A DNA stretch of 64,000 bases from positions 49,662,001-49,726,000 of the forward strand of contig NW_025964223.1 in NCBI RefSeq assembly GCF_023055435.1, in the 5' to 3' direction. Shown here one piece after another: positions 31,532-61,498 of the stretch (position 1 is the first letter of the stretch; each line of letters begins with the position of its first letter). This DNA comes from Haliotis rufescens. Lineage: Eukaryota. Under the pieces are notes generated by a model that did not search any database, was not told the DNA's origin, and saw nothing but the letters and a program-made list of their open reading frames with translations. Made by a program: the position numbers and the translations under genes.

Positions 31532-32630
31532 AGTGGTAAGTTTGAGTGGTAAAAATTCACGTCAGCTACGAGAGAAGCACAGAGAGCGAATGACACTTCC
31601 CCACAGACAGCCCGGCTGATACTCCGGAGGCGCGGACGTCGGAGGAGACACCCTGCTTGTTGTGGCTGATAGCTGCACGCTTACAAGCGCGTGTGCTTTT
31701 TCGTGTATTTGTATCCGAATAATCACTTCTTAATCAAGGAAAGTTTCAATTTCAACAATACAGTTAGGTAGTAAAAACATTTGGCTACATTTCGGTTACA
31801 ATAGCAACGCTCACGGGTGAAGTTCAAAGCCACACGTGCTGTTTCCAATGAAGCGACCCAGTCTAAAATGTAGACATCGCTACTTTCAAAAGCACATTTT
31901 TAGCCTTGAGACTCAAGTTTATGCATTTTAAACGTTGCCTGTCAATTCTCAATATATCTAACTATGAAAGTAAAACACAACACTCATCAGTATTGCCTAT
32001 GATAAGCTAGAACAAGCTTTCAAACAACGACAATGAAGCACGTTTTTCTGACGACTTCGCCATTTTGCAACAGAAAACATTTGACACTATATTTCTGGAG
32101 ACATAATTTTGGTCACTTCAATTAGAGTTGAAACTAACTTTGTCATAACAAGTAAGTAACGGGGATTTTACTTTCAGGAAAACAGTCTAGTAAGACGAGG
32201 ATCTCGGGACACAAGCAGCTAGGGCGCGAAGCCCCGAACAGTAACATATATACATTGGTGTTTAGATCACTCGATCGGTCGTCACAGATTAAGTCTTTTT
32301 GCCTGTCTTAATAGCACGATATTAGTAGGGGTCTTCGTCGTTTGGATGTTAATTTAACCAGAACAATATAGGCTACCATCCATCAACGAAAAGTGAATGT
32401 TTCAGACGAAAGGCCGGATCGAGTGAGCGAGTGTGCCGGGCCTCGTGTTAAACAGTGATCACATGTTTTTAGAACGGCTAGATTTTAATCCCTGTAAATA
32501 TACATCATAAATCAACAAACACAACATGTCTACTGAACCCGCTGAAAACGCGAGCATGCTGTTTTCATGGCAATGTCTGTTTACCAATGTGTGGTGGCTA
32601 TATGTAGCTAAAGTTTGCCGACAAGCATTG

Positions 32631-35600
32631 CATACCAGTAGCTCACCAACTAAACCACCAGGTACAAAACCTAGTTAAAATAGCAAAAACTAGAGACTGG
32701 AAAAAATTCTGTGAGGGATTAAACAACCGTACAGACGCCAGAACGGTCTGGCGTAAAATCCACGCCGTTAGAGGCCTAAAACGTCACCAAAAGACACCTA
32801 ACATAAATAACTCAACAACCCCTAGCGAAAAAGCAGACAACCTAGCAAACCACTTTTCGGCCACAAGCAGTAATAACAATTTCAGTGACAAATTCCAACT
32901 AAAACTTAAAACAGAAACCAAACCTAGCCAAGACCCAAATAATGACGCCCTAGAAATAAATCAGCCGTACACAATAGAAGAACTCAATTATGTACTCCAA
33001 AATAGGAAAAAGGGAACAGCCCCAGGACTAGACCTAACCTCCTACCAAATATTAAAAAAACTCCCCCCTAAATTACTCCAGACACTACTCAAACTATATA
33101 ACCTAATCTACATAAAAGGCCATGTACCAACCCCCTGGAAAGAGGCGCTAATCATACCTATTCCCAAACCCGGTAAACCAACCAACCAAGCTAACTCTTA
33201 TAGACCAATCTCTCTTACTTCCAACCTTTGCAAAGTAATGGAATCCATGGCCAAAAATAGACTTCAACACTATCTATCTCAAAATAACATAATAAACTCA
33301 GATCAAAGCGGTTTCACTCCTGGCCGCTCCACCCTAGATAACCTCGCTCGTCTCGAACAGGATATTAAAACCGGTCAACTAAACAAACAATACACAACAG
33401 GCATCTTTCTGGACTTCTCTAAAGCCTTTGATATGGTATGGCATAACGGATTAATCCAAAAACTTAAAAAAATAGGACTTAAAGGTCAAATCGTAAACTA
33501 CATCCAAAGCTTCCTCCAAAACCGCAAAATTACAGTGGGTATAGACCAGGCCTTGTCAGAGCAGTGTCCCCTGGAAAACGGCACCCCTCAAGGCAGCATT
33601 CTTAGCCCCACACTTTTTAACATAATGATAAACGACCTATTTGATGGCTTATCCCCCAAAATAAACACCTCAAAATTTGCGGATGACGGAGCCCTATGGA
33701 TCCGCTCCAAAAGTATCTTAACATCTCAGGACTTACTACAAAAATCCCTAAACAAAATACAAAACTGGGCAGACAAATGGGGCTTCTCCCTAAACTCCGA
33801 AAAAACGACAGGAATAGTATTCAAACACAAAAATATGAGACGGGCCTCCCCTCTCCTCAAACTAAACAATAAACCAATCATATTTCAAAAGCAAACTAAA
33901 TTCCTAGGTCTAATCTTCGACGAGCATCTCTCCTGGGATGCTCACGTCCAAAACCTAACCACCAGATGTAACAAAGATCTAAACACACTAAGATGCCTAA
34001 CCGGCTCCAACTGGGGAGCCTCTAAAGATACCCTCCTCAGCCTCTACACATCCCTAATCAGATCTAAACTAGACTACGGCTGTGCCATATACGATACCCT
34101 AAACGAAACCCTAACCAAAAAACTAGATTCAATACAATATCAAGCCCTCAAACTAGTAACACGTACTCAACATGGCACCTCCCTCACATCACTTCAGGCC
34201 CTTACAGGAGAAATGCCACTAAATTTACGTAGACAACACTTAACACTAAACTTCTGGGCAGCATCTCAATCAAACCCCCTTCTCCAAAACATGCTAAACC
34301 AAAACATACGTCCCCAAAACCAGGCACTAACTAGAAAACACCCTCTACTCACCCCAATATCCCAACGAATAATAAACTACCATAACGAACACCAAATAGG
34401 AAACCAACAACAAAACTGCAAACAATCAAACGTATTCACCCCAAAACTTAAAATCCCCAAAATAGACACATCCCTAGCCAACACAATAAACAAACAAACC
34501 GACCCAAACCTAGCTAAAAGCACATCACTAGCTTACATCCATCAAAAATGGCCAAATTGGTGTCACATATACACAGACGGATCCGCTGATCCGATCACAA
34601 ATCACACAGGTTTCGGAGTCCATATAGCCCAACCAGTCAAAAATACTCAATCCTTCCGACTCCCAAACAACCAATCTATATTCACCGCAGAGCTCATGGG
34701 TATCGCCACGGCGCTCCACAGCCATCACACCAAAAACCAAAAAAAAATCTTAATACTCTCAGACTCACTAAGCGGACTTCAGGCCCTCCAAAACAAAAAC
34801 ACCAAAAACCGCCCCAAATTAATAAACCAAATTCTCAAAAGCGTAAACAAACTAACAGAGGCAGGCAAAAACATACAACTTATCTGGATACCAGCTCACG
34901 TAGGAATTTACGGGAATGAAAACGCAGACAGAGCCGCAAAACAATCCCTAAAAATACCAGACATAAGCCTTAAGCTACCAATATCTAAAGCAGAAATCAA
35001 AAGTATAAACAAACGTAAAATCACCCAAAAATGGCATAACCTCTATCAAAACACAAAAACCCAAATCCTAAAAACCCTCAAAAAACCCCTCACCAAACCA
35101 AAAATCCTCCATCCCTCCAAAAAAATCGATAGAATAATCACCAAACTCCAAACAGGACACACCAAACTAAATAACCACCTTCTAAAACTAAAAAAACACG
35201 CAAACGGGAAGTGCCCACACTGCACTCACCCAGAAACAATAGACCACGTACTACTACATTGCACCCACTACCTCACACAACGTACAACATTACAAACCAA
35301 CCTAAATCCAAATAACGCTCTTACCTTAGAAGCAATCCTTAACCCCCAAAATAAAATAGAAAACTTCAAAGCCCTAGGCATTTACCTAACCAAAACAGAA
35401 CTAATTAACCGTATTTAAAACTTCACTAAACCACCAACACTAAACATCCAAAAAACATCAACTCACCCCCACACACTCCCTTAGTCCCAACCACTCCCCC
35501 AAGGCATGTATTCCAAATCTCAAAATTTCAAAACTTTATATAAGCAACCACTAAACCCCCCTCCTTGGTTGCACTCCTCTCGCTACCACTTTTATACCAC

Positions 35601-35684
35601 TAAATGGCCCGGCCGGGCCCGTGTGCGAAATACGCTCCAGTCGGAAAGCGCACGTAAAATCTCCTAATATAAGTAAGTAAGTAA
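32631..35684 (+). mobile_element. 5'-truncated LINE copy (3,054 bp, subfamily A) inserted at the 5S 5' end
   Basis: Matches the full element from ~19242 to its 3' end; 11-bp TSD GACAAGCATTG at 32620-32630 and 35685-35695; 3054+11+3007 equals the observed spacing of 6072. Confidence 0.97.
33238..35418 (+). pseudogene. Truncated ORF2 (RT, RNase H, CCHC; no endonuclease), frame still open
   Basis: 726 aa from an internal Met, near-identical to the C-terminal part of full ORF2. Confidence 0.85.
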
Positions 35685-35694
35685 GACAAGCATT

Positions 35695-35814
35695 GTCTAC
35701 GGCCATACCACGTTGAAAACACCGGTTCTCGTCCGATCACCGAAGTTAAGCAACGTCGGGCCCGGAGAGTACTTGGATGGGTGACCGCCTGGGAACACCG
35801 GGTGCAGTAGACAT
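35695..35814 (+). rRNA. 5S: 5S rRNA, intact, 10 bp downstream of a LINE tail
   Basis: As 2333..2452; native flank upstream of -10 displaced by the LINE. Confidence 0.98.
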
Positions 35815-37039
35815 TTTTGCTGTGCGATTCCCACTTTTTTTCCTTTTTCGACCATAAGGTGCACTTGCCTCATTCACATCTGATGTAATCATACACTTTT
35901 ATTTCCTTGTAAATGGCCCCACTCATGCATGTCTGCTCAAAGACATAGCTGCCAGCCATGTATTCTTACATACCTTTACAGAAAGGAATTTTCCACTATA
36001 CATGTGATCATATTCAGTTGTCAGTTCACCCAACTCGTCAACTATTCTGAAGGCATGTACGTCCTTTTCGCCACATAAAGGTGTTTGCGTGCACCGATAA
36101 TTGACTATTTTACTTACTTTCTTACTTTCAAAGCATGAATATATAATATATACATGTAAAATTATAATGTTGTTCGTGTTAAGTCTCGGCTCACATCTCT
36201 TTGCCTACACAGATAAGAAAAGGAGAAAGAGTTAGATCGTACAGAGCGCCTGTCAATAGGAGTTCACTGGCTTGCTGCTGGAAAATGTATTTTGAAAGCT
36301 GTGAGCAAGCTGATCACTGTTGACACGCTTTAAAAATATGAAAAAAAAACGACGCGACTGTGTGATAAACCAGCTATTTTATGTTCCCCGTTCTAGCTGA
36401 TCGCTGGCAAGCGTACTTTAGACTTATTAGAAAGTATTTCCATACATTTCTCTCGCCATACAACAGGTAGATGTGACATGTTGCAGGTAGGGGGCTAGGC
36501 GAAACGCACACGACCAAGGGCGCACAACTCTTGGCGCTCTATTTGAAAAGTCGTGCACAGGCGAGGCGTGTGTCGGTAAAACACCCCGTGGATGTCTGGC
36601 CTTTATCGCCGTTTTACACCTTTGAACACAACGTGCATGTGCAGCTACACACATAGGAAGTCTGCACTCAGGATATTATATATATCAACGACACTAATCG
36701 CCTCACTTTCCAACATACACCCATTTGGGGGGTTAATAAACAAGCATAACAACAGTCATTAGTGTGAAGACACACTACCCCACCCCCCCATCCCCCCCCA
36801 CACACACAATAAAATCCCTGACATACCTTTATCAACATCACCTATGTGTGTTATGTGCGTGGTGGGTGTTGCTGCCACGTTATCTCTGTTATCACGAGAA
36901 CCTGCACTTTATTACTGCTAATATACATATTTATTGTTTTGTTATCAGTGTTTTCAAGTTTTCTTTTGGGGTATTTGGATGGCCCTGAAAAGGGCCTTTG
37001 GACCACAGAAATGTGGAGCGAAGGCGTGACAATGAGAGC

Positions 37040-37603
37040 TTAAGCCTTCTTTGGCTTGACTGCCTTCTTCTTGGGGGTCTTGACCTTCTTGGGTTTGGCT
37101 GCTGCCTTCTTGGGTGTCTTCGCCTTCTTGGGCTTGGCTGCAGCCTTCACCTTCTTTGGTGACTTAGCGGCCTTCTTAGCGGCTGTTTTGGGTTTCTTGG
37201 CAGCAGCTGGCTTCTTGACTTTCTTGGGGGATTTGGCAGCCTTCTTTGGTTTGGCAGCTGCCTTAGCCTTCTTGGGTTTTTCGTCTTTCTTTGCCTCGCC
37301 AAGACGGAATGATCCAGCGGCTCCAGTTCCCTTTGATTGCTTCAGTGCGCCGTTCTTGACTCCATTTTTCAAAGCAGTCTTGATGCGAGCATTGATGGCC
37401 ACCTGGTTGTCACCAACCTTGTAGTTGGCCAAGATGTATTTCAGAACAGCCTGTCGGGAAGAACCACCCCTCTCCTTCAGGGTTGAAATAGCTTTCTTGA
37501 TCATCTCCAAATAGGTAGGATGTGCGGCAGCCTTCTTAGGCTTGGCAGCAGCCTTCTTCTTGGGAGTCTTGACAACAGCGGGGGCAGCAGCAGCATCAGC
37601 CAT
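37040..37603 (-). CDS. H1: Linker histone H1
   Basis: Same protein as 671..1234. Confidence 0.99.
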
Positions 37604-38701
37604 AGTGGTAAGTTTGAGTGGTAAAAATTCACGTCAGCTACGAGAGAAGCACAGAGAGCGAATGACACTTCCCCACAGACAGCCCGGCTGATACTCCGGA
37701 GGCGCGGACGTCGGAGGAGACACCCTGCTTGTTGTGGCTGATAGCTGCACGCTTACAAGCGCGTGTGCTTTTTCGTGTATTTGTATCCGAATAATCACTT
37801 CTTAATCAAGGAAAGTTTCAATTTCAACAATACAGTTAGGTAGTAAAAACATTTGGCTACATTTCGGTTACAATAGCAACGCTCACGGGTGAAGTTCAAA
37901 GCCACACGTGCTGTTTCCAATGAAGCGACCCAGTCTAAAATGTAGACATCGCTACTTTCAAAAGCACATTTTTAGCCTTGAGACTCAAGTTTATGCATTT
38001 TAAACGTTGCCTGTCAATTCTCAATATATCTAACTATGAAAGTAAAACACAACACTCATCAGTATTGCCTATGATAAGCTAGAACAAGCTTTCAAACAAC
38101 GACAATGAAGCACGTTTTTCTGACGACTTCGCCATTTTGCAACAGAAAACATTTGACACTATATTTCTGGAGACATAATTTTGGTCACTTCAATTAGAGT
38201 TGAAACTAACTTTGTCATAACAAGTAAGTAACGGGGATTTTACTTTCAGGAAAACAGTCTAGTAAGACGAGGATCTCGGGACACAAGCAGCTAGGGCGCG
38301 AAGCCCCGAACAGTAACATATATACATTGGTGTTTAGATCACTCGATCGGTCGTCACAGATTAAGTCTTTTTGCCTGTCTTAATAGCACGATATTAGTAG
38401 GGGTCTTCGTCGTTTGGATGTTAATTTAACCAGAACAATATAGGCTACCATCCATCAACGAAAAGTGAATGTTTCAGACGAAAGGCCGGATCGAGTGAGC
38501 GAGTGTGCCGGGCCTCGTGTTAAACAGTGATCACATGTTTTTAGAACGGCTAGATTTTAATCCCTGTAAATATACATCATAAATCAACAAACACAACATG
38601 TCTACTGAACCCGCTGAAAACGCGAGCATGCTGTTTTCATGGCAATGTCTGTTTACCAATGTGTGGTGGCTATATGTAGCTAAAGTTTGCCGACAAGCAT
38701 T

Positions 38702-38821
38702 GTCTACGGCCATACCACGTTGAAAACACCGGTTCTCGTCCGATCACCGAAGTTAAGCAACGTCGGGCCCGGAGAGTACTTGGATGGGTGACCGCCTGGG
38801 AACACCGGGTGCAGTAGACAT
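38702..38821 (+). rRNA. 5S: 5S rRNA
   Basis: As 2333..2452. Confidence 0.99.
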
Positions 38822-40046
38822 TTTTGCTGTGCGATTCCCACTTTTTTTCCTTTTTCGACCATAAGGTGCACTTGCCTCATTCACATCTGATGTAATCATA
38901 CACTTTTATTTCCTTGTAAATGGCCCCACTCATGCATGTCTGCTCAAAGACATAGCTGCCAGCCATGTATTCTTACATACCTTTACAGAAAGGAATTTTC
39001 CACTATACATGTGATCATATTCAGTTGTCAGTTCACCCAACTCGTCAACTATTCTGAAGGCATGTACGTCCTTTTCGCCACATAAAGGTGTTTGCGTGCA
39101 CCGATAATTGACTATTTTACTTACTTTCTTACTTTCAAAGCATGAATATATAATATATACATGTAAAATTATAATGTTGTTCGTGTTAAGTCTCGGCTCA
39201 CATCTCTTTGCCTACACAGATAAGAAAAGGAGAAAGAGTTAGATCGTACAGAGCGCCTGTCAATAGGAGTTCACTGGCTTGCTGCTGGAAAATGTATTTT
39301 GAAAGCTGTGAGCAAGCTGATCACTGTTGACACGCTTTAAAAATATGAAAAAAAAACGACGCGACTGTGTGATAAACCAGCTATTTTATGTTCCCCGTTC
39401 TAGCTGATCGCTGGCAAGCGTACTTTAGACTTATTAGAAAGTATTTCCATACATTTCTCTCGCCATACAACAGGTAGATGTGACATGTTGCAGGTAGGGG
39501 GCTAGGCGAAACGCACACGACCAAGGGCGCACAACTCTTGGCGCTCTATTTGAAAAGTCGTGCACAGGCGAGGCGTGTGTCGGTAAAACACCCCGTGGAT
39601 GTCTGGCCTTTATCGCCGTTTTACACCTTTGAACACAACGTGCATGTGCAGCTACACACATAGGAAGTCTGCACTCAGGATATTATATATATCAACGACA
39701 CTAATCGCCTCACTTTCCAACATACACCCATTTGGGGGGTTAATAAACAAGCATAACAACAGTCATTAGTGTGAAGACACACTACCCCACCCCCCCATCC
39801 CCCCCCACACACACAATAAAATCCCTGACATACCTTTATCAACATCACCTATGTGTGTTATGTGCGTGGTGGGTGTTGCTGCCACGTTATCTCTGTTATC
39901 ACGAGAACCTGCACTTTATTACTGCTAATATACATATTTATTGTTTTGTTATCAGTGTTTTCAAGTTTTCTTTTGGGGTATTTGGATGGCCCTGAAAAGG
40001 GCCTTTGGACCACAGAAATGTGGAGCGAAGGCGTGACAATGAGAGC

Positions 40047-40610
40047 TTAAGCCTTCTTTGGCTTGACTGCCTTCTTCTTGGGGGTCTTGACCTTCTTGGG
40101 TTTGGCTGCTGCCTTCTTGGGTGTCTTCGCCTTCTTGGGCTTGGCTGCAGCCTTCACCTTCTTTGGTGACTTAGCGGCCTTCTTAGCGGCTGTTTTGGGT
40201 TTCTTGGCAGCAGCTGGCTTCTTGACTTTCTTGGGGGATTTGGCAGCCTTCTTTGGTTTGGCAGCTGCCTTAGCCTTCTTGGGTTTTTCGTCTTTCTTTG
40301 CCTCGCCAAGACGGAATGATCCAGCGGCTCCAGTTCCCTTTGATTGCTTCAGTGCGCCGTTCTTGACTCCATTTTTCAAAGCAGTCTTGATGCGAGCATT
40401 GATGGCCACCTGGTTGTCACCAACCTTGTAGTTGGCCAAGATGTATTTCAGAACAGCCTGTCGGGAAGAACCACCCCTCTCCTTCAGGGTTGAAATAGCT
40501 TTCTTGATCATCTCCAAATAGGTAGGATGTGCGGCAGCCTTCTTAGGCTTGGCAGCAGCCTTCTTCTTGGGAGTCTTGACAACAGCGGGGGCAGCAGCAG
40601 CATCAGCCAT
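40047..40610 (-). CDS. H1: Linker histone H1
   Basis: Same protein as 671..1234. Confidence 0.99.
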
Positions 40611-41708
40611 AGTGGTAAGTTTGAGTGGTAAAAATTCACGTCAGCTACGAGAGAAGCACAGAGAGCGAATGACACTTCCCCACAGACAGCCCGGCTGATA
40701 CTCCGGAGGCGCGGACGTCGGAGGAGACACCCTGCTTGTTGTGGCTGATAGCTGCACGCTTACAAGCGCGTGTGCTTTTTCGTGTATTTGTATCCGAATA
40801 ATCACTTCTTAATCAAGGAAAGTTTCAATTTCAACAATACAGTTAGGTAGTAAAAACATTTGGCTACATTTCGGTTACAATAGCAACGCTCACGGGTGAA
40901 GTTCAAAGCCACACGTGCTGTTTCCAATGAAGCGACCCAGTCTAAAATGTAGACATCGCTACTTTCAAAAGCACATTTTTAGCCTTGAGACTCAAGTTTA
41001 TGCATTTTAAACGTTGCCTGTCAATTCTCAATATATCTAACTATGAAAGTAAAACACAACACTCATCAGTATTGCCTATGATAAGCTAGAACAAGCTTTC
41101 AAACAACGACAATGAAGCACGTTTTTCTGACGACTTCGCCATTTTGCAACAGAAAACATTTGACACTATATTTCTGGAGACATAATTTTGGTCACTTCAA
41201 TTAGAGTTGAAACTAACTTTGTCATAACAAGTAAGTAACGGGGATTTTACTTTCAGGAAAACAGTCTAGTAAGACGAGGATCTCGGGACACAAGCAGCTA
41301 GGGCGCGAAGCCCCGAACAGTAACATATATACATTGGTGTTTAGATCACTCGATCGGTCGTCACAGATTAAGTCTTTTTGCCTGTCTTAATAGCACGATA
41401 TTAGTAGGGGTCTTCGTCGTTTGGATGTTAATTTAACCAGAACAATATAGGCTACCATCCATCAACGAAAAGTGAATGTTTCAGACGAAAGGCCGGATCG
41501 AGTGAGCGAGTGTGCCGGGCCTCGTGTTAAACAGTGATCACATGTTTTTAGAACGGCTAGATTTTAATCCCTGTAAATATACATCATAAATCAACAAACA
41601 CAACATGTCTACTGAACCCGCTGAAAACGCGAGCATGCTGTTTTCATGGCAATGTCTGTTTACCAATGTGTGGTGGCTATATGTAGCTAAAGTTTGCCGA
41701 CAAGCATT

Positions 41709-42804: not shown

Positions 42805-42853
<49 letters not shown>

Positions 42854-49543: not shown

Positions 49544-51398
49544 TTACTTACTTACTTATATTAGGAGATTTTACGTGCGCTTTCCGACTGGAGCGTATTT
49601 CGCACACGGGCCCGGCCGGGCCACTTAGTGGTATAAAAGTGGTAGCGAGAGGAGTGCAACCAAGGAGGGGGGTTTAGTGGTTGCTTATATAAAGTTTTGA
49701 AATTTTGAGATTTGGAATACATGCCTTGGGGGAGAGGTTGGGACTAAGGGAGTGTGTGGGGGTGAGTTGATGTTTTTTGGATGTTTAGTGTTGGTGGTTT
49801 AGTGAAGTTTTAAATACGGTTAATTAGTTCTGTTTTGGTTAGGTAACTGCCTAGGGCTTTGAAGTTTTCTATTTTATTTTGGGGGTTAAGGATTGCTTCT
49901 AAGGTAAGAGCGTTATTTGGATTTAGGTTGGTTTGTAATGTTGTACGTTGTGTGAGGTAGTGGGTGCAATGTAGTAGTACGTGGTCTATTGTTTCTGGGT
50001 GAGTGCAGTGTGGGCACTTCCCGTTTGCGTGTTTTTTTAATTTTAGAAGGTGGTTATTTAGTTTGGTGTGTCCTGTTTGGAGTTTGGTGATTATTCTATC
50101 GATTTTTTTGGAGGGATGGAGGATTTTTGGTTTGGTGAGGGGTTTTTTGAGGGTTTTTAGGATTTGGGTTTTTGTGTTTTGATAGAGGTTATGCCATTTT
50201 TGGGTGATTTTACGTTTGTTTATACTTTTGATTTCTGCTTTAGATATTGGTAGCTTAAGGCTTATGTCTGGTATTTTTAGGGATTGTTTTGCGGCTCTGT
50301 CTGCGTTTTCATTCCCGTAAATTCCTACGTGAGCTGGTATCCAGATAAGTTGTATGTTTTTGCCTGCCTCTGTTAGTTTGTTTACGCTTTTGAGAATTTG
50401 GTTTATTAATTTTGGGCGGTTTTTGGTGTTTTTGTTTTGGAGGGCCTGAAGTCCGCTTAGTGAGTCTGAGAGTATTAAGATTTTTTTTTGGTTTTTGGTG
50501 TGATGGCTGTGGAGCGCCGTGGCGATACCCATGAGCTCTGCGGTGAATATAGATTGGTTGTTTGGGAGTCGGAAGGATTGAGTATTTTTGACTGGTTGGG
50601 CTATATGGACTCCGAAACCTGTGTGATTTGTGATCGGATCAGCGGATCCGTCTGTGTATATGTGACACCAATTTGGCCATTTTTGATGGATGTAAGCTAG
50701 TGATGTGCTTTTAGCTAGGTTTGGGTCGGTTTGTTTGTTTATTATGTTGGCTAGGGATGTGTCTATTTTGGGGATTTTAAGTTTTGGGGTGAATACGTTT
50801 GATTGTTTGCAGTTTTGTTGTTGGTTTCCTATTTGGTGTTCGTTATGGTAGTTTATTATTCGTTGGGATATTGGGGTGAGTAGAGGGTGTTTTCTAGTTA
50901 GTGCCTGGTTTTGGGGACGTATGTTTTGGTTTAGCATGTTTTGGAGAAGGGGGTTTGATTGAGATGCTGCCCAGAAGTTTAGTGTTAAGTGTTGTCTACG
51001 TAAATTTAGTGGCATTTCTCCTGTAAGGGCCTGAAGTGATGTGAGGGAGGTGCCATGTTGAGTACGTGTTACTAGTTTGAGGGCTTGATATTGTATTGAA
51101 TCTAGTTTTTTGGTTAGGGTTTCGTTTAGGGTATCGTATATGGCACAGCCGTAGTCTAGTTTAGATCTGATTAGGGATGTGTAGAGGCTGAGGAGGGTAT
51201 CTTTAGAGGCTCCCCAGTTGGAGCCGGTTAGGCATCTTAGTGTGTTTAGATCTTTGCTACATCTGGTGGTTAGGTTTTGGACGTGAGCATCCCAGGAGAG
51301 ATGCTCGTCGAAGATTAGACCTAGGAATTTAGTTTGCTTTTGAAATATGATTGGTTTATTGTTTAGTTTGAGGAGAGGGGAGGCCCGTCTCATATTTT
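49544..51398 (-). mobile_element. 5'-truncated LINE copy (1,855 bp, subfamily A) in H1, no clear TSD
   Basis: Tail begins at 49544; 5' junction at 51398/51399; net insertion 1855 bp. Confidence 0.96.
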
Positions 51399-51531
51399 TC
51401 TCCTTCAGGGTTGAAATAGCTTTCTTGATCATCTCCAAATAGGTAGGATGTGCGGCAGCCTTCTTAGGCTTGGCAGCAGCCTTCTTCTTGGGAGTCTTGA
51501 CAACAGCGGGGGCAGCAGCAGCATCAGCCAT
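49810..51531 (-). CDS. Chimeric ORF: H1 residues 1-44 fused in frame to the LINE ORF2 C-terminus (RT thumb/tether, RNase H, CCHC), 573 aa
   Basis: Junction ...STLKE|KNMRRASP; no internal stops; keeps YTDGS, AEL, SDS, WIPAHVGIYGNENAD. Expression is not shown by sequence. Confidence 0.75.
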   Translation of the reverse strand: MADAAAAPAVVKTPKKKAAAKPKKAAAHPTYLEMIKKAISTLKEKNMRRASPLLKLNNKPIIFQKQTKFLGLIFDEHLSWDAHVQNLTTRCSKDLNTLRCLTGSNWGASKDTLLSLYTSLIRSKLDYGCAIYDTLNETLTKKLDSIQYQALKLVTRTQHGTSLTSLQALTGEMPLNLRRQHLTLNFWAASQSNPLLQNMLNQNIRPQNQALTRKHPLLTPISQRIINYHNEHQIGNQQQNCKQSNVFTPKLKIPKIDTSLANIINKQTDPNLAKSTSLAYIHQKWPNWCHIYTDGSADPITNHTGFGVHIAQPVKNTQSFRLPNNQSIFTAELMGIATALHSHHTKNQKKILILSDSLSGLQALQNKNTKNRPKLINQILKSVNKLTEAGKNIQLIWIPAHVGIYGNENADRAAKQSLKIPDISLKLPISKAEIKSINKRKITQKWHNLYQNTKTQILKTLKKPLTKPKILHPSKKIDRIITKLQTGHTKLNNHLLKLKKHANGKCPHCTHPETIDHVLLHCTHYLTQRTTLQTNLNPNNALTLEAILNPQNKIENFKALGSYLTKTELINRI

Positions 51532-52629
51532 AGTGGTAAGTTTGAGTGGTAAAAATTCACGTCAGCTACGAGAGAAGCACAGAGAGCGAATGACACTTCC
51601 CCACAGACAGCCCGGCTGATACTCCGGAGGCGCGGACGTCGGAGGAGACACCCTGCTTGTTGTGGCTGATAGCTGCACGCTTACAAGCGCGTGTGCTTTT
51701 TCGTGTATTTGTATCCGAATAATCACTTCTTAATCAAGGAAAGTTTCAATTTCAACAATACAGTTAGGTAGTAAAAACATTTGGCTACATTTCGGTTACA
51801 ATAGCAACGCTCACGGGTGAAGTTCAAAGCCACACGTGCTGTTTCCAATGAAGCGACCCAGTCTAAAATGTAGACATCGCTACTTTCAAAAGCACATTTT
51901 TAGCCTTGAGACTCAAGTTTATGCATTTTAAACGTTGCCTGTCAATTCTCAATATATCTAACTATGAAAGTAAAACACAACACTCATCAGTATTGCCTAT
52001 GATAAGCTAGAACAAGCTTTCAAACAACGACAATGAAGCACGTTTTTCTGACGACTTCGCCATTTTGCAACAGAAAACATTTGACACTATATTTCTGGAG
52101 ACATAATTTTGGTCACTTCAATTAGAGTTGAAACTAACTTTGTCATAACAAGTAAGTAACGGGGATTTTACTTTCAGGAAAACAGTCTAGTAAGACGAGG
52201 ATCTCGGGACACAAGCAGCTAGGGCGCGAAGCCCCGAACAGTAACATATATACATTGGTGTTTAGATCACTCGATCGGTCGTCACAGATTAAGTCTTTTT
52301 GCCTGTCTTAATAGCACGATATTAGTAGGGGTCTTCGTCGTTTGGATGTTAATTTTACCAGAACAATATAGGCTACCATCCATCAACGAAAAGTGAATGT
52401 TTCAGACGAAAGGCCGGATCGAGTGAGCGAGTGTGCCGGGCCTCGTGTTAAACAGTGATCACATGTTTTTAGAACGGCTAGATTTTAATCCCTGTAAATA
52501 TACATCATAAATCAACAAACACAACATGTCTACTGAACCCGCTGAAAACGCGAGCATGCTGTTTTCATGGCAATGTCTGTTTACCAATGTGTGGTGGCTA
52601 TATGTAGCTAAAGTTTGCCGACAAGCATT

Positions 52630-52749
52630 GTCTACGGCCATACCACGTTGAAAACACCGGTTCTCGTCCGATCACCGAAGTAAAGCAACGTCGGGCCCGG
52701 AGAGTACTTGGATGGGTGACCGCCTGGGAACACCGGGTGCAGTAGACAT
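52630..52749 (+). rRNA. 5S: 5S rRNA (T53A in box A)
   Basis: GAAGTAAAGC in place of GAAGTTAAGC at 52682. Confidence 0.95.
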
Positions 52750-53974
52750 TTTTGCTGTGCGATTCCCACTTTTTTTCCTTTTTCGACCATAAGGTGCACT
52801 TGCCTCATTCACATCTGATGTAATCATACACTTTTATTTCCTTGTAAATGGCCCCACTCATGCATGTCTGCTCAAAGACATAGCTGCCAGCCATGTATTC
52901 TTACATACCTTTACAGAAAGGAATTTTCCACTATACATGTGATCATATTCAGTTGTCAGTTCACCCAACTCGTCAACTATTCTGAAGGCATGTACGTCCT
53001 TTTCGCCACATAAAGGTGTTTGCGTGCACCGATAATTGACTATTTTACTTACTTTCTTACTTTCAAAGCATGAATATATAATATATACATGTAAAATTAT
53101 AATGTTGTTCGTGTTAAGTCTCGGCTCACATCTCTTTGCCTACACAGATAAGAAAAGGAGAAAGAGTTAGATCGTACAGAGCGCCTGTCAATAGGAGTTC
53201 ACTGGCTTGCTGCTGGAAAATGTATTTTGAAAGCTGTGAGCAAGCTGATCACTGTTGACACGCTTTAAAAATATGAAAAAAAAACGACGCGACTGTGTGA
53301 TAAACCAGCTATTTTATGTTCCCCGTTCTAGCTGATCGCTGGCAAACGTACTTTAGACTTATTAGAAAGTATTTCCATACATTTCTCTCGCCATACAACA
53401 GGTAGATGTGACATGTTGCAGGTAGGGGGCTAGGCGAAACGCACACGACCAAGGGCGCACAACTCTTGGCGCTCTATTTGAAAAGTCGTGCACAGGCGAG
53501 GCGTGTGTCGGTAAAACACCCCGTGGATGTCTGGCCTTTATCGCCGTTTTACACCTTTGAACACAACGTGCATGTGCAGCTACACACATAGGAAGTCTGC
53601 ACTCAGGATATTATATATATCAACGACACTAATCGCCTCACTTTCCAACATACACCCATTTGGGGGGTTAATAAACAAGCATAACAACAGTCATTAGTGT
53701 GAAGACACACTACCCCACCCCCCCATCCCCCCCCACACACACAATAAAATCCCTGACATACCTTTATCAACATCACCTATGTGTGTTATGTGCGTGGTGG
53801 GTGTTGCTGCCACGTTATCTCTGTTATCACGAGAACCTGCACTTTATTACTGCTAATATACATATTTATTGTTTTGTTATCAGTGTTTTCAAGTTTTCTT
53901 TTGGGGTATTTGGATGGCCCTGAAAAGGGCCTTTGGACCACAGAAATGTGGAGCGAAGGCGTGACAATGAGAGC

Positions 53975-54405
53975 TTAAGCCTTCTTTGGCTTGACTGCCT
54001 TCTTCTTGGGGGTCTTGACCTTCTTGGGTTTGGCTGCTGCCTTCTTGGGTGTCTTCGCCTTCTTGGGCTTGGCTGCAGCCTTCACCTTCTTTGGTGACTT
54101 AGCGGCCTTCTTAGCGGCTGTTTTGGGTTTCTTGGCAGCAGCTGGCTTCTTGACTTTCTTGGGGGATTTGGCAGCCTTCTTTGGTTTGGCAGCTGCCTTA
54201 GCCTTCTTGGGTTTTTCGTCTTTCTTTGCCTCGCCAAGACGGAATGATCCAGCGGCTCCAGTTCCCTTTGATTGCTTCAGTGCGCCGTTCTTGACTCCAT
54301 TTTTCAAAGCAGTCTTGATGCGAGCATTGATGGCCACCTGGTTGTCACCAACCTTGTAGTTGGCCAAGATGTATTTCAGAACAGCCTGTCGGGAAGAACC
54401 ACCCC
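53975..54405 (-). pseudogene. H1: H1 3' remnant (duplicate of 49113..49543)
   Basis: Same junction, offset 4862 bp. Confidence 0.95.
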
Positions 54406-56260
54406 TTACTTACTTACTTATATTAGGAGATTTTACGTGCGCTTTCCGACTGGAGCGTATTTCGCACACGGGCCCGGCCGGGCCACTTAGTGGTATAAAA
54501 GTGGTAGCGAGAGGAGTGCAACCAAGGAGGGGGGTTTAGTGGTTGCTTATATAAAGTTTTGAAATTTTGAGATTTGGAATACATGCCTTGGGGGAGTGGT
54601 TGGGACTAAGGGAGTGTGTGGGGGTGAGTTGATGTTTTTTGGATGTTTAGTGTTGGTGGTTTAGTGAAGTTTTAAATACGGTTAATTAGTTCTGTTTTGG
54701 TTAGGTAACTGCCTAGGGCTTTGAAGTTTTCTATTTTATTTTGGGGGTTAAGGATTGCTTCTAAGGTAAGAGCGTTATTTGGATTTAGGTTGGTTTGTAA
54801 TGTTGTACGTTGTGTGAGGTAGTGGGTGCAATGTAGTAGTACGTGGTCTATTGTTTCTGGGTGAGTGCAGTGTGGGCACTTCCCGTTTGCGTGTTTTTTT
54901 AATTTTAGAAGGTGGTTATTTAGTTTGGTGTGTCCTGTTTGGAGTTTGGTGATTATTCTATCGATTTTTTTGGAGGGATGGAGGATTTTTGGTTTGGTGA
55001 GGGGTTTTTTGAGGGTTTTTAGGATTTGGGTTTTTGTGTTTTGATAGAGGTTATGCCATTTTTGGGTGATTTTACGTTTGTTTATACTTTTGATTTCTGC
55101 TTTAGATATTGGTAGCTTAAGGCTTATGTCTGGTATTTTTAGGGATTGTTTTGCGGCTCTGTCTGCGTTTTCATTCCCGTAAATTCCTACGTGAGCTGGT
55201 ATCCAGATAAGTTGTATGTTTTTGCCTGCCTCTGTTAGTTTGTTTACGCTTTTGAGAATTTGGTTTATTAATTTTGGGCGGTTTTTGGTGTTTTTGTTTT
55301 GGAGGGCCTGAAGTCCGCTTAGTGAGTCTGAGAGTATTAAGATTTTTTTTTGGTTTTTGGTGTGATGGCTGTGGAGCGCCGTGGCGATACCCATGAGCTC
55401 TGCGGTGAATATAGATTGGTTGTTTGGGAGTCGGAAGGATTGAGTATTTTTGACTGGTTGGGCTATATGGACTCCGAAACCTGTGTGATTTGTGATCGGA
55501 TCAGCGGATCCGTCTGTGTATATGTGACACCAATTTGGCCATTTTTGATGGATGTAAGCTAGTGATGTGCTTTTAGCTAGGTTTGGGTCGGTTTGTTTGT
55601 TTATTATGTTGGCTAGGGATGTGTCTATTTTGGGGATTTTAAGTTTTGGGGTGAATACGTTTGATTGTTTGCAGTTTTGTTGTTGGTTTCCTATTTGGTG
55701 TTCGTTATGGTAGTTTATTATTCGTTGGGATATTGGGGTGAGTAGAGGGTGTTTTCTAGTTAGTGCCTGGTTTTGGGGACGTATGTTTTGGTTTAGCATG
55801 TTTTGGAGAAGGGGGTTTGATTGAGATGCTGCCCAGAAGTTTAGTGTTAAGTGTTGTCTACGTAAATTTAGTGGCATTTCTCCTGTAAGGGCCTGAAGTG
55901 ATGTGAGGGAGGTGCCATGTTGAGTACGTGTTACTAGTTTGAGGGCTTGATATTGTATTGAATCTAGTTTTTTGGTTAGGGTTTCGTTTAGGGTATCGTA
56001 TATGGCACAGCCGTAGTCTAGTTTAGATCTGATTAGGGATGTGTAGAGGCTGAGGAGGGTATCTTTAGAGGCTCCCCAGTTGGAGCCGGTTAGGCATCTT
56101 AGTGTGTTTAGATCTTTGCTACATCTGGTGGTTAGGTTTTGGACGTGAGCATCCCAGGAGAGATGCTCGTCGAAGATTAGACCTAGGAATTTAGTTTGCT
56201 TTTGAAATATGATTGGTTTATTGTTTAGTTTGAGGAGAGGGGAGGCCCGTCTCATATTTT
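54406..56260 (-). mobile_element. Duplicate of the 1,855-bp LINE insertion in the next H1
   Basis: Identical junctions; one difference seen (49735 A vs 54597 T). Confidence 0.96.
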
Positions 56261-56393
56261 TCTCCTTCAGGGTTGAAATAGCTTTCTTGATCATCTCCAA
56301 ATAGGTAGGATGTGCGGCAGCCTTCTTAGGCTTGGCAGCAGCCTTCTTCTTGGGAGTCTTGACAACAGCGGGGGCAGCAGCAGCATCAGCCAT
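54672..56393 (-). CDS. Second copy of the H1(1-44)/ORF2 RNase H chimeric ORF, 573 aa
   Basis: Same translation as 49810..51531. Confidence 0.75.
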   Translation of the reverse strand: MADAAAAPAVVKTPKKKAAAKPKKAAAHPTYLEMIKKAISTLKEKNMRRASPLLKLNNKPIIFQKQTKFLGLIFDEHLSWDAHVQNLTTRCSKDLNTLRCLTGSNWGASKDTLLSLYTSLIRSKLDYGCAIYDTLNETLTKKLDSIQYQALKLVTRTQHGTSLTSLQALTGEMPLNLRRQHLTLNFWAASQSNPLLQNMLNQNIRPQNQALTRKHPLLTPISQRIINYHNEHQIGNQQQNCKQSNVFTPKLKIPKIDTSLANIINKQTDPNLAKSTSLAYIHQKWPNWCHIYTDGSADPITNHTGFGVHIAQPVKNTQSFRLPNNQSIFTAELMGIATALHSHHTKNQKKILILSDSLSGLQALQNKNTKNRPKLINQILKSVNKLTEAGKNIQLIWIPAHVGIYGNENADRAAKQSLKIPDISLKLPISKAEIKSINKRKITQKWHNLYQNTKTQILKTLKKPLTKPKILHPSKKIDRIITKLQTGHTKLNNHLLKLKKHANGKCPHCTHPETIDHVLLHCTHYLTQRTTLQTNLNPNNALTLEAILNPQNKIENFKALGSYLTKTELINRI

Positions 56394-57265
56394 AGTGGTA
56401 AGTTTGAGTGGTAAAAATTCACGTCAGCTACGAGAGAAGCACAGAGAGCGAATGACACTTCCCCACAGACAGCCCGGCTGATACTCCGGAGGCGCGGACG
56501 TCGGAGGAGACACCCTGCTTGTTGTGGCTGATAGCTGCACGCTTACAAGCGCGTGTGCTTTTTCGTGTATTTGTATCCGAATAATGGAACGAGGAAATAG
56601 AACAAACTAGGAAAAAACGTAAATCAGCCTTCAATAAAGCCAAACGCGACCATAATCACATACCGGTAGCTCACCAACTAAACCACCAAGTCCAAACACT
56701 AGTCAAAATAGCAAAAACCAGAGACTGGAAAAAATTCTGCGAGGGACTAAATAATCGCACAGATGCCAGAACAGTCTGGCGCAAAATCCACGCCGTCAGA
56801 GGCTTAAAAAAACAAAAAAAAACGCCTAACATAAACAACTCAAATACTCCCAGCGAAAAAGCAAATAACCTAGCAAACCACTTTTCGGCAATAAGTAGCA
56901 ATAACAACTTCAGCCATAAATTCAAACAAAAACTCCAGGCAGAAACCAAACCTATCCAAGAACCAAACAATAACAACCTAGAAATAAACCAACCGTACAC
57001 AATAGAAGAACTAAACCACGTACTTCAAAATAGGAAAAAAGGAACAGCCCCAGGTCTAGACTTAACTTCCTACCAAATAATCAAAAAACTCCCGCCCAAA
57101 CTACTCCAGTCACTACTAAAACTCTATAATCTAATTTATCTAAACGGCCAGGTTCCAAATCCTTGGAAAGAAGCTCTCATTATCCCCATCCCTAAACCCG
57201 GTAAACCAGCCAACCAAGCCAACTCCTATAGGCCAATATCGCTCACCTCTAACCTATGCAAAGTA

Positions 57266-59446
57266 ATGGAATCCATGGCAAAAAATAGACTCCAACACTA
57301 CTTAACCCAAAATAATATAATTAATTCAGACCAAAGCGGTTTTACTCCCGGCCGCTCAACCCTAGATAACCTAGCACGTCTAGAACAGGATATTAAAACA
57401 GGACAACTAAATAAACAATATACTACAGGCATCTTTCTGGACTTTTCCAAAGCCTTCGATATGGTATGGCACAACGGGCTAATCCAAAAACTTAAAAAAA
57501 TAGGACTAAAAGGTCAAATCATAAACTACATCCAAAGTTTCCTTAAAAACCGTAAAATCACAGTGGGTATAGACCAGGCCTTGTCGGACCAGTGTCCACT
57601 AGAAAACGGCACACCCCAAGGCAGCATTCTTAGCCCCACACTATTCAACATAATGATAAACGATCTCTTTGATGGCTTATCCCCTAAAATAAATACTTCC
57701 AAATTTGCAGATGACGGAGCCCTCTGGATCCGTTCTAAAAGTATTTTAACATCCCAGGACTTACTCCAGAAATCACTAAACAAAATACAACAATGGGCCG
57801 ATAAATGGGGGTTCTCCCTAAACACTGAAAAAACCACAGGAATAGTATTTAAACATAAAAATATGACACGGGCCACCCCCACCCTTAAACTAAACAACAA
57901 ACCAATCCAATTTCAGAAACAAACTAAATTCTTAGGACTAATATTCGACGAACATCTCTCCTGGGATGCCCACGTCCAAAACCTAACCACAAGATGTAGC
58001 AAAGATTTAAACACACTAAGATGTCTAACCGGCTCCAACTGGGGTGCCTCTAAAGATACCCTCCTCAGCCTCTATACATCCCTAATCAGATCCAAACTAG
58101 ACTACGGCTGTGCCATATACGATACCTTAAACGAAACATTAACCAAAAAACTAGATTCAATCCAATACCAAGCCCTCAAATTAGTCACACGTACCCAACA
58201 AGGCACCTCCCTTACGTCACTTCAGGCCCTCACAGGAGAAATGCCGCTAAACCTACGTAGGCAACACTTAACACTAAACTTCTGGGCAGCTTCTCAATCA
58301 AACCCTCTTCTACAAAATCTCCTAAACCTAAACATACGTCCCAAAAACCAGGCACTAACTAGGAAACACCCTCTACTCACTCCAATTTCCCAACGTATTA
58401 TAAACTACCGCAACGAACACCAAATAGGGAACCTACAACAAAACTGCAAAAAATCCAACGTATTCACCCCAAAACTTAAAATCCCCAAAATAGACACTTC
58501 CCTAGCCAAAACAATAAACAAACAAACTGACCCTAACATAGCTAAATCCACCTCACTAGCCTACATACATCAAAACTGGCCAAATTGGTGCCACATCTAC
58601 ACAGATGGATCTGCTGATCCATTCACAAATCACACAGGTTTCGGAGTCCACATAGCCCAACCAATAAGAAATACGCAATCCTTCCGACTCCCAAACAACA
58701 AATCTATCTTCACCGCAGAACTCATGGGTATCGCCACGGCCCTCCACAGCCATCACACTAAAAACCAAAATAAAATCCTAATACTCTCAGACTCACTAAG
58801 TGGACTCCAGGCCCTCCAAAGCAAAAACACCAAAAACCGCCCCAAATTAATAAACCAAATTCTCAAAAGTATAGATAAATTAACAGAGGCAGGCAAAAAC
58901 ATAGTACTCACCTGGATACCAGCCCACGTAGGAATATACGGTAATGAGAACGCCGACCAAGCCGCTAAACAGTCCCTAAAAATACCAGAGATAAGCCTTA
59001 AGCTACCAATAAGTAAATCAGAGATCAAAAGTATCAACAAACACAAAATCACCCAAAAATGGCATAGCCTCTATCAAAACACAAACACCCAAATCATAAA
59101 AGTCCTCAAAAAACCCCTTACCAAACCAAAAATCCTCCATCCATCCAAAAAAATCGATAGAATAATCACCAAACTCCAAACAGGACACACCAAACTAAAT
59201 AACCATCTTCTAAAACTAAAAAAACACGCAAACGGGAAGTGTCCACACTGCACTCACCCAGAAACCATAGACCACGTACTACTACATTGCACCCACTACC
59301 TCATCCAACGTACAACATTACAAACCAACCTAAATCCAAATAAAGCTCTTACCTTAGAAGCAATCCTCAACCCCCAAAATAAAATAGAAAACTTCAAAGC
59401 CCTAGGCATTTACCTAACCAAAACAGACCTAATTAATCGTATCTAA
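57266..59446 (+). pseudogene. Truncated ORF2 of subfamily B (RT, RNase H, CCHC), frame open
   Basis: 726 aa, colinear with 33238..35418 with mostly conservative substitutions. Confidence 0.85.
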
Positions 59447-59599
59447 AAATTCACTAAACCACCAACACTAAACATCTAAAAACAACAACTCACCCCCACA
59501 CACTCCCTTAGTCCCAACCACTCCCCCAAGGCATGTCTTCCAAATCTCAAAATTTCAAAACTTTATATAAGCAACCACTAAACCCCCCTCCTTCCCTTT

Positions 59600-61252
59600 T
59601 GTCATTATGTGGGCTTTTAGTGTTTGGAGATTACGATTTTGGTTTGGTTTTTGGTTTATAGTCCTGCGATTGCTAGGTTGTAACTATCGTAGAATTCTTG
59701 GTAGGTTTGGGTAGTTAGATTTAGTCTATGTGCTACCTGGTGTAGGTTAGTGGCTTTAAGGTCTGGTTTGATTTCTTTAAGCATGTATACTAGTAGGAGT
59801 GTGAAGCTATTTAGTTTGGTGGTTAAAGTTTCGGGTTCAGGTTGAGTTTGGGGTTTGCGTTTGCGATTTTTCAGGGTTTTGGGGGCTGAAAATGTTTTAT
59901 CATTTATGTTTTGATCAGTTGTGGTTTGGGAGTCATCTAGGTTAATTAGATTGGTTTCCTCACTATCCATGGGAGTTGTGTGGGTGTTTGGTTGTGTTGG
60001 AGTAGGTGTACTGGGTATTTCAATGGGTTTAGTAATGTTTAGTTTTTCGTGTGTTGCTTGCTCGTGTGTGGTTGTTGTTGCCCTGGTGGCTGTAGATTGT
60101 ATGGTGTTGGGGTGAGATATGGTAGGTTTAGTGAGTTTTGGTTTAGGTGCGGGTGTGGATGCGGCGACTGGTTTGGGTGTGGCGAATGTTGGCGGGTAGT
60201 GTTGGGTTTGGGTGTTTGTGGCTGATGCTTGTGGTGTTGGCATGAGGACGCCGTCGTACGGGCTCTGTAGGTGTGGTTGGTTGTTTGGTTGTGGTGTGGG
60301 TAGTAGGGGTGTTCTTGGATGCTGTGTCAGTTTTCGTGTTTGTAGTTTGGCCGAGTCGATGTTTATGTGTCGGTTGGCCTGTTGGGTGAGTGTGTGTTTG
60401 TGGGGGCATTTGTTGGATAGTGAGGAGTGGGTGTTTGTTTTGCAGTGAATGCACCAGGGGGCGCATGGCCCTAGACATTGAGGTTGAGCGCAGTTTCTAC
60501 ATTTAGTTTTTTGATATTTACATCCGTTAGCGGTGTGATTGTATTGGAGGCAGTTTGTGCACTGTTTGACTTGTTTGATATAGGGTTTAACTTCTAATTT
60601 AGATGACGCTCCGAAGGAGATGTGTTTAGGGGCTTCTGGATACGTTTCTGATTTTTGGAAGTTTATGATGACTATCGGTGTGTTGGTTATTCTACCGTTC
60701 CTATTTGATGTAATTCTTTTAGTGCTGGTTATTTTAGGTTGGGGGAAGGAGCCTGTGTTTAGATTTGCTTCGTTACTGTAGAATTCTAGGTCCTCCTCTG
60801 ACTCTCTAGGGTTTACTCTAATTACTCCTCTAGTGTATAGTTGCCAGTTTGGGGTTTGGTGGGTTACTGTGTATTGAAATATTTCCGTTATTTTTTTGGC
60901 TGCGTTAAGTGATTGTTGGTCCGGAAAGATGATCTGAAATCCTTTGTGGGCTTCCCTGATTTTATCGAAGAGTATTTGTTGTTTTTTAAAGAATGATCCT
61001 ACTTTATTGGCGGAGAGTACCTTACTTAGGATGTTTATGGGGCCAGCCGCGCAGAAGTAGAGGGCGAAGGTGACTATAGATGCGGGGGTGGAAGGTGATG
61101 CAGGTGTTGTGTTTGAAGCATTTAGCTTCCGTTTCTTTGGGTTTGTTGTGGTTGCAGGCGAATCCGGAGTTTTGGTGGGAGAAGCGACTGTGGTTTGCTT
61201 TCCGAATTCGTGCGGGATGAGGGTTTCAGGTGTCCGATCGGAGGTGTTGTGG
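59600..61252 (-). mobile_element. Inverted LINE fragment: ORF1 from about codon 24 through the first two codons of ORF2
   Basis: Colinear with 20211-21863 at a constant offset of 39389; two substitutions noticed; no tail or TSD. Confidence 0.93.
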
Positions 61253-61378
61253 TTGCACTCTTCTCGCTTCCCCTTTTATATCACTAAATGGCCCGGCCGG
61301 GCCCGTGTGCGAAATACGCTCCAGTCGGAAAGCGCACGTAAAATCCCCTAATATAAGTAAGTAAGTAAGACAAGCATT

Positions 61379-61498
61379 GTCTACGGCCATACCACGTTGA
61401 AAATACCGGTTCTCGTCCGATCACCGAAGTTAAGCAACGTCGGGCCCGGAGAGTACTTGGATGGGTGACCGCCTGGGAACACCGGGTGCAGTAGACAT
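61379..61498 (+). rRNA. 5S: 5S rRNA (C26T variant), 10 bp downstream of a LINE tail
   Basis: GAAAATACCGG at 61404; otherwise as 2333..2452. Confidence 0.97.

Follow-up and report, generated by a model that had tools for sequence, protein, structure and literature searches.

In the array of 5S ribosomal RNA (rRNA) and histone H1 genes of the red abalone, Haliotis rufescens, one clade of long interspersed elements (LINEs) has inserted repeatedly at the same few bases: in front of seven 5S genes of the array the 3' tail of a LINE stands at -10 or -8, in 5S orientation each time, and the copies represent at least five lineages, with as little as ~42% identity in the second open reading frame (ORF2). 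The window, as we call the whole stretch that was analyzed, comprises 64,000 nucleotides (NW_025964223.1, positions 49,662,001 to 49,726,000); plain coordinates below are those of the window, whilst coordinates with a prefix such as C445 refer to the assembly. A first-pass annotation of the window had proposed, from two such junctions, a retrotransposon that targets 5S genes. We put at roughly 0.65 the probability that these LINEs are instead a dispersed, active clade of the I superfamily whose insertion is guided by promoter position, at the TATA box or the initiation complex, a mechanism that we infer from the anatomy of the insertion sites. On the best-supported reading the 5S promoter, repeated ~100 times, is the most often hit target of the clade. 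The sequence examined amounted to 264 kb, the window plus the 200 kb to its left, together with seven small loci around junction matches.

The window is part of a 5S-histone H1 array

Self-comparison resolved the window into 3008-bp units with >99.7% identity, each with a 5S gene on the + strand and the gene for a 187-aa histone H1 on the - strand. Rfam models found 15 complete 5S genes (+) and 16 histone 3' stem-loops (-), and there are no N runs within the window; no contig resembled human sequence. The H1 protein has 98% identity with 'histone 24-like [Haliotis rufescens]'. The array of the window lies at C445:49.27-49.84 Mb, holds 104 of the 107 canonical 5S starts of the 1.33-Gb assembly and is the only large 5S array of the species. 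Apart from the 5S genes behind the LINE copies A and B described below, the remaining 13 in the window have the native upstream sequence ...GTTTGCC/GACAAGCATT (here and below a slash marks the junction position). The unoccupied target was taken from a reference unit:

29592-29622, + strand: native unoccupied target, with a TATATG box at 5S -31 to -26 and the hot spot at -11/-10

Copies A and B end at the same base in front of a 5S gene

The first-pass annotation had described A and B as members of different subfamilies that stop at one base before 5S, both in 5S orientation, and the coordinates bear this out.

32620-32629, + strand: upstream copy of the target site duplication (TSD) of A, gacaagcatt, equal to 5S -10 to -1; the unit is complete to 32629, and the same 10 bases stand at 35685-35694
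32630-35684, + strand: LINE copy A, lineage A, 3055 bp, 5'-truncated at element position 3174
35620-35654, + strand: stem-loop in the 3' untranslated region (UTR) of copy A, with arms at 35620-35626 and 35648-35654, then TAAAATC and a 4-nt repeat tail
35685-35694, + strand: downstream TSD copy of A; the first-strand nick falls between the equivalents of 35684 and 35685, which is 5S -11/-10
35695-35813, + strand: complete 5S rRNA gene behind A (RF00001, 111.5 bits, full length)
56586-61368, + strand: LINE copy B; the 5' end adjoins unit position 2102, with ~0.9 kb of target deleted and no TSD
59594-61249, - strand: inverted fragment of the lineage-A ORF1 region (element 553-2205), 1653 bp, 99.9% identical to the full-length copy, nested in the 3' UTR of B
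61369-61497, + strand: 5S -10 to -1 flank plus complete 5S gene behind B (5S at 61379-61497, 109.1 bits)
16188-22415, - strand: full-length intact LINE, 6228 bp (ORF1 20267-21931, ORF2 16455-20216), in the H1 coding region and sense to H1; TSD cctacctatt

Copy A ends in TAATATAA(GTAA)3 and B ends likewise; each tail adjoins GACAAGCATT, which is followed by a complete 5S gene. Copy A is 99.8% identical to the full-length copy of the window, and its 5' junction is unique in the genome. Its TSD is a perfect 10 bp, or 11 bp with the shared G counted, so that the duplication from -10 to the +1 G reported earlier stands, as does the statement that the 5S coding region is whole. Copy B starts 73 bp further 5' than A and shares 89.7% identity with it in the body and 95.8% in the last 119 bp. 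The B body is 97% identical to another array lineage (n1), and its last 119 bp are identical to the tail of a further lineage. Because the 5' end of B adjoins unit position 2102, ~0.9 kb of the unit is missing there. The two junctions are independent events, made by different lineages, one with a TSD and the other with a target deletion.

A few observations concern these copies themselves. The inverted fragment in B lacks a 3' end and lies exactly 119 bp from the end of B; it is not a simple product of target-primed reverse transcription. The 5S gene behind A may retain a TATA-like box, because in the stretch 35661-35694 TAATATAA puts TATAA at 5S -27 to -23, compared with -31 to -26 for the native TATATG, and its distance would vary with how many GTAA repeats there are. 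Contigs of three other DNA runs lead from the unit side of the A 5' junction into 5S and from the LINE side into upstream LINE sequence; the 5' junction of A itself was not seen in these contigs, which drop rare variants and so give no evidence of absence. In an RNA-like public run, LINE contigs were present at low depth and may be DNA; the last ~80 nt of the LINE (35611-35694) reached ~100 times the contig depth of the body, which fits an abundant short retroposon with the same tail.

Seven 5S genes carry LINE tails with differing 5' junctions

Across the array, the LINE copies that end in front of 5S are as follows.

Junction 1: copy A; TSD of 10 bp, unique 5' junction
Junction 2: A-type copy at C445:49774705, inside a 9247-bp interval between 5S starts
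Junction 3: copy B, 89.7% identical to A; target deletion
Junction 4: copy in locus L023, 97.8% identical to A; joined as GTA/CAAGCATT, at -8
Junction 5: lineage C, 80% nucleotide identity to A; TSD gacaa
Junction 6: tandem block of lineage C, 80% nucleotide identity to A; repeats separated by the TSD gataagca, in a unit variant with T at -8
Junction 7: lineage E, ~42% ORF2 identity to A; (TATC)n tail, TSD (a)caagcatt of 8-9 bp

The 3' side of these insertions is nearly invariant. The first strand to be nicked is that of the 5S template, and the nick falls between -11 and -10, shifting by no more than 2 nt, whilst the second-strand or 5' junction varies, with TSDs of 10, 8-9, 8 or 5 bp or a 0.9-kb deletion. 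The tails are of the (GTAA)n or (TATC)n type or have a variant pre-tail. A fixed nick with a variable 5' junction is the mark that target-primed reverse transcription leaves when it occurs again and again, independently, at a single preferred site. The differing TSDs, tails, 5' ends and lineages rule out descent from a single insertion, gene conversion and the landing of new copies in the tail of a resident one; one old insertion later overwritten by gene conversion had been named in the first-pass annotation as a possible refutation, and the anatomy of the junctions excludes it. Insertion into a resident tail was rejected as well on the finding that unit sequence, not an older LINE, lies directly 5' of A, C and E.

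Six of the seven events are secure and the seventh is probable. Copy A and the copy at C445:49774705 are identical over 1.7 kb, where both equal the lineage consensus and have no derived change in common, so their independence rests on their different 5' ends alone. The 9247-bp interval around the latter copy corresponds to one unit plus one full-length element. Because the interval with the full-length copy of the window measures 9246 bp, the simplest reading is that the copy at C445:49774705 is also full length.

If insertion were uniform within the 3-kb unit, 7 of ~21 clade events would fall in one 3-nt stretch and one orientation with a corrected probability of 5e-15. With ~2457 copies inserted uniformly over the genome, ~3e-4 hits would be expected at the 5S junction and ~1 copy anywhere in the array.

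Microhomology between tail and target was considered as a cause of the hot spot and rejected: it cannot determine the site, since the same bases are used by lineages whose tails are (TATC)n and (GTCA)n. The flanks of lineage A begin with G at ~72% of sites and with GT at ~41%, which makes the tail register ambiguous by 1-3 nt.

The elements form an active clade of I-superfamily build

The full-length copy of the window encodes a 554-aa ORF1 and a 1253-aa ORF2. ORF2 has an APE endonuclease domain (Exo_endo_phos at residues 8-216, 6.5e-13; Exo_endo_phos_2, 4.6e-21), a reverse transcriptase (RT) (RVT_1 at 502-753, 1e-46) and, downstream of it, an RNase H (RNase_H at 970-1097, 3e-18). ORF1 had no Pfam hit; two CCHC knuckles, C-X2-C-X4-H-X4-C and C-X2-C-X4-H-X6-C, were read in it by motif. 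This is the build of the I superfamily (I/Nimb/Ingi group), to which the elements are assigned by domain order, and it agrees with the I-group label that the element had been given before.

All lineages have in common a 3' UTR module of a 7-bp stem, TAAAATC and a 4-nt repeat tail, in which the repeat is GTAA, GTCA, TATC or TGAC according to lineage. The stem is 100% paired in seven lineages, and three of its pairs show compensatory changes. Compared with lineage A, ORF2 is 75-83% identical in C, 70-78% in D and ~42% in E and F. A tree of ORF2 with database relatives placed all array lineages in one clade with 99% local support. The clade also takes in three relatives from other sources, one of which branches between lineages A-D and the E/F pair, and the shared habit is accordingly old, or else general to the clade. 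The elements are young and active, with intact copies. Another full-length copy, at C445:49500283-49506515, differs in a modular way from lineage A as represented by 16188-22415, with 98.4% identity in ORF2 and only 68% in ORF1, which suggests recombination between lineages.

Most copies are dispersed through the genome

Searching the assembly with the last 119 bp of A returned 996 first-look 3'-end candidates, compared with 1290 for lineage C and 171 for lineage E. The best 40 of the 996 lineage-A matches were all 100% identical and lay on >20 contigs; among the best 40 matches each of lineages C and E, only the query copy itself was in the array. The 58 exact lineage-A tails led into ~46 different, unrelated flanks whose common part was only a leading G or GT. 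No dispersed copy had 5S flank after its tail, all exact tail-plus-flank matches being in the array, and a general CATT motif was not enriched in the dispersed flanks (3 non-array flanks with CATT, close to expectation).

Well under 1% of the copies of lineages A, C and E therefore stand at 5S; most are dispersed, and the elements are not 5S-specific. Dispersal of most copies was what the first-pass annotation had set against its own proposal, and a 5S-targeting retrotransposon in the sense of R1 or Mutsu has to be given up in view of these numbers and the unrelated flanks. Measured by the marks of target-specific LINEs, the clade has a shared nick position (seven at 5S -10/-8) and lacks a concentration of most copies at one target. 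The coincidence of the two junctions first noticed is a small part of a strong hot spot that several lineages use. Lineage F is the exception to dispersal: genome-wide it has only 29 candidate 3' ends, of which 11 are near-full, and 5 of these 11 are in the array; it may be the most specialized lineage.

Several other loci hold clusters in which 3' ends of lineages A, C and E lie a few kb to tens of kb from one another:

C1:42.33-42.46 Mb, co-cluster of A, C and E 3' ends
C583:16.245-16.266 Mb, the same
C586:0.878-0.883 Mb, the same
C2:17.590-17.595 Mb, the same

Copies also occur in periodic arrays (C46:19.445-19.639 Mb; C2:11.420-11.464 Mb; C8:402146-404093). Among them are seven lineage-A tails that run into one common flank, GTGGTTGTAAACTTA, many of which stand ~10 kb from the next; lineage-C 3' ends are repeated every ~6.36 kb in a group of eight and every 874 bp in a group of three.

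The same clade recurs at 5S -45 and at the start of the H1 gene

Two further positions in the unit were hit more than once. At 5S -45 (unit position 2964) lie the 3' ends of two lineages, antisense to 5S; the occupant with a (GTAA)n tail shares 89% identity with A, and the one with a (GTCA)n tail 78%. At unit position 1982 (H1 -12), lineage F is found in H1 orientation at least two times, once as a 1.9-kb truncated copy with an 11-bp TSD and once as a full-length copy with a different 5' flank; a third candidate 3' end of lineage F lies further left, with an offset compatible with unit position 1982. The TSD of lineage F spans H1 -12 to -2. The H1 start codon is at unit position 1910. The classic histone cap consensus word, CATTC, occurs upstream of it with its A at unit position 1970, which would be the H1 cap site by this consensus, and TATCA is found at -30.

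The lineage F loci (L015:9610 onward and L001:7383-9300, at C445:49551610 and 49409383) have a (TGAC)n tail. The region upstream of 5S (29563-29623, or the same stretch of any unit; -60 to +1) is a near-palindrome, CAATGTCTGT ... TATATG ... ACAAGCATTG, with the TATA-like box at its center, and the -10 and -45 hot spots are near mirror images inside it.

Other lineages gave single hits at H1 -3, +32, +56, +144 and +192, all sense to H1, and one lineage-A copy lies at unit position 1135 on the + strand. Besides A and B, the window holds three copies of the same family that the first-pass annotation had not reported, all on the - strand inside H1: the full-length copy listed above and two truncated ones.

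49545-51398, - strand: lineage-A copy, 1854 bp, 5'-truncated, in the H1 coding region at unit position 1778, sense to H1
54407-56260, - strand: 1854-bp copy at the same site of the next unit, 99.95% identical to the copy at 49545-51398

The two truncated copies are probably one insertion event that was duplicated with the unit.

Recurrent sites lie at a similar distance from a TATA-like box

In element orientation, the distance from the start of the TATA-like box to the nick is 21-23 nt at 5S -10/-8, 17 nt at 5S -45 and 18 nt at H1 -12, so that all three recurrent sites are 17-23 nt downstream of such a box. Their TSDs span approximately -10/-12 to -1/-2, the stretch of DNA that is unwound in the open initiation complex. 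Where the element lies in sense orientation, the first-nicked strand is the template strand of the gene. An A/T-rich run occurs about as far from the nick at several of the sites hit once, and is absent from two of them; this sample is too small for a test.

These positions suggest that the ribonucleoprotein of the clade would be guided by promoter position and not by a long DNA word, and that it would nick the template strand at the upstream edge of an initiation complex containing TBP, belonging to RNA polymerase III (Pol III) at 5S or to RNA polymerase II (Pol II) at H1. The array repeats its promoters ~100-fold, which makes the recurrences visible. In a more explicit form, the machinery of the clade would read the TATA-bound TBP complex of Pol III and Pol II genes alike, nick the template ~20 nt past TATA, make the second nick near +1, and so land between TATA and the start and leave the transcribed region whole. 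We offer this form tentatively and rate its chances somewhat below even.

Several points weigh against guidance by promoter position. The rule of a TATA box or initiation complex rests on three recurrent sites at two promoters, and two of these sites, 5S -10 and -45, depend on one common quasi-palindromic TATATA box. The flanks of the same two sites have the word ACARRCATTG in common, which leaves room for sequence recognition. The H1 cap site, and hence the H1 numbering, was taken from the CATTC consensus. H1 +144 and +32 are among the single hits and have no TATA-like motif at that distance. Finally, the 1.7-kb identity of A and the copy at C445:49774705 bears on the count of events.

Alternative explanations of the hot spot

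A sequence-specific endonuclease would account for the two 5S sites if the APE domain or another part of ORF2 read a word near the 5S start (ACARRCATTG) and nicked a few bases upstream, as in R1 or Tx1 elements. The flanks in element orientation, G/ACAAGCATTG and GGTAA/ACAGACATTG, are compatible with this, and at the H1 hot spot CATTC follows 11 nt after the nick. The distance from nick to word, however, varies between the sites (1, 5 and 11 nt), the ~46 distinct dispersed flanks of lineage A lack such a word, >99% of the copies are elsewhere, and one and the same base is used by lineages that differ in their tails and are no more than 42% identical in ORF2. We consider this explanation unlikely.

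Tethering to Pol III factors, with the element binding TFIIIB or TFIIIC as Ty3 and Dictyostelium TRE5-A do, agrees with the position of the 5S hot spots, which bracket -45 to -10; TFIIIB covers this region on Pol III genes. A fixed distance to a Pol III gene start was seen for 5S, the one class of Pol III gene examined. The same clade is nonetheless found recurrently at the start and leader of H1, which is transcribed by Pol II, and we regard a Pol III-specific tether as quite unlikely. The first-pass annotation had offered endonuclease preference or a Pol III tether as the mechanism; the preferred nick site behind that proposal is real, but the sense hits at the H1 start and leader and the antisense hits at 5S -45 make both a Pol III-only tether and a preference for 5S sequence too narrow.

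Homing by read-through is very unlikely in our judgement. Transcripts that carry 5S flank would anneal to other units and reproduce the junction, much as 3' flank pairing acts in R2 and R1. This would give a constant 3' junction with a variable 5' junction and would allow lineages to evolve in place within the array. The junctions of different lineages, however, lie 2 nt apart, their tails vary in length and type, and 5S flank follows the tail in none of the dispersed copies; the H1 and -45 sites, and lineage-A copies identical to dispersed ones, would be left unexplained.

The absence of any targeting, with one old insertion spread by unequal crossing-over or gene conversion or with the array as a passive sink for coincidences, is hardly credible: amplification of insertions by arrays does occur (for instance the two H1 copies, at 49545 and 54407, or a duplicated block of 28 kb), but the seven junctions have different truncation points, tails, lineages and TSD lengths, each TSD fitting its own unit variant, the chance probability within the unit given above is far too small, a sink should gather the common repeats of the genome and the array holds mainly one clade, and insertions that disrupt H1 were retained, so that selection for harmless sites cannot give single-base precision.

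Comparison with known elements

The closest parallel by target is Mutsu, a Tx1-clade LINE of fish that is specific for 5S rRNA genes and inserts inside the gene (PMC5340908; listed in PMC10946416). Both are APE-type LINEs that occupy 5S arrays in 5S orientation and use one base repeatedly. Mutsu is a true specialist of the L1/Tx1 superfamily, whereas the abalone LINE inserts 8-10 bp upstream and leaves the gene whole, has an RNase H as in the I superfamily, and places <1% of its copies at 5S. A 2024 review reported insertions of transposable elements in animal 5S spacers from fish only, without a positional rule (PMC10946416).

Targeting by position to sites upstream of Pol III genes has been described for Ty1/Ty3 and the Dictyostelium TREs (PMC5911963, PMC5391098, PMC6101501), and for TRE5-A and Ty3 it is independent of flank sequence and attributed to TFIIIB contacts (PMC5391098, PMC3159450, PMC6101501, PMC5911963). 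The abalone clade would resemble these in integrating by position at or upstream of Pol III gene starts, including 5S. It differs in that TRE5-A inserts ~48 bp upstream and Ty3 is a long terminal repeat (LTR) element with an integrase. Both are also near-exclusive for Pol III genes, whereas the abalone clade, known from sequence alone, is found at a Pol II histone promoter as well and is mostly dispersed.

Among I-superfamily LINEs of gastropods, Nimbus and Ingi are abundant in molluscs (PMC11203168). They have the same ORF2 order of APE, RT and RNase H; they are described as dispersed, and we found no positional or site preference for them in the literature. With R1 and R2 of 28S ribosomal DNA (rDNA) the clade shares recurrence at one base in a tandem RNA gene array, blocks of tandem elements with target sequence between them, and 5' junctions that vary. 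R1 and R2 are bound strictly to a sequence inside the gene, whereas the abalone preference is partial and upstream of the gene.

Our literature search found no paper on abalone 5S-H1 arrays or on a LINE guided by a TATA box or start site. To our knowledge, yeast Ty elements and Dictyostelium TREs are the only retrotransposons for which targeting to gene starts by position is understood in detail, and the site-specific animal LINEs that we know of recognize DNA words. If guidance by promoter position is correct, an animal LINE clade that nicks before a 5S and a histone gene would represent a third route to safe or privileged landing sites, and would show how APE-type endonucleases can be steered by chromatin-bound factors. 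The insertions also matter for rDNA biology, since in ~7% of the 5S genes of the genome the native upstream promoter region is replaced by a LINE 3' end.

Other features of the array

In the 264 kb, ~18-20 insertions belong to the clade. The others are one Ty3/gypsy-type element, one unrelated LINE and one other insert, of 2.7 kb.

C445:49402022-49407404 (L001:22-5404): Ty3/gypsy-type LTR retrotransposon, with RT, RNase H, integrase and chromodomain in a 1276-aa ORF

The right end of this element adjoins 5S at approximately +12, inside the start of the gene. The 28-kb duplicated block mentioned above lies in the left part of the array. A 5S variant in which GTCTACGACC replaces GTCTACGGCC is present in three consecutive units of the window (5340, 8347 and 11354), has lower Rfam scores, and is a case of local homogenization.

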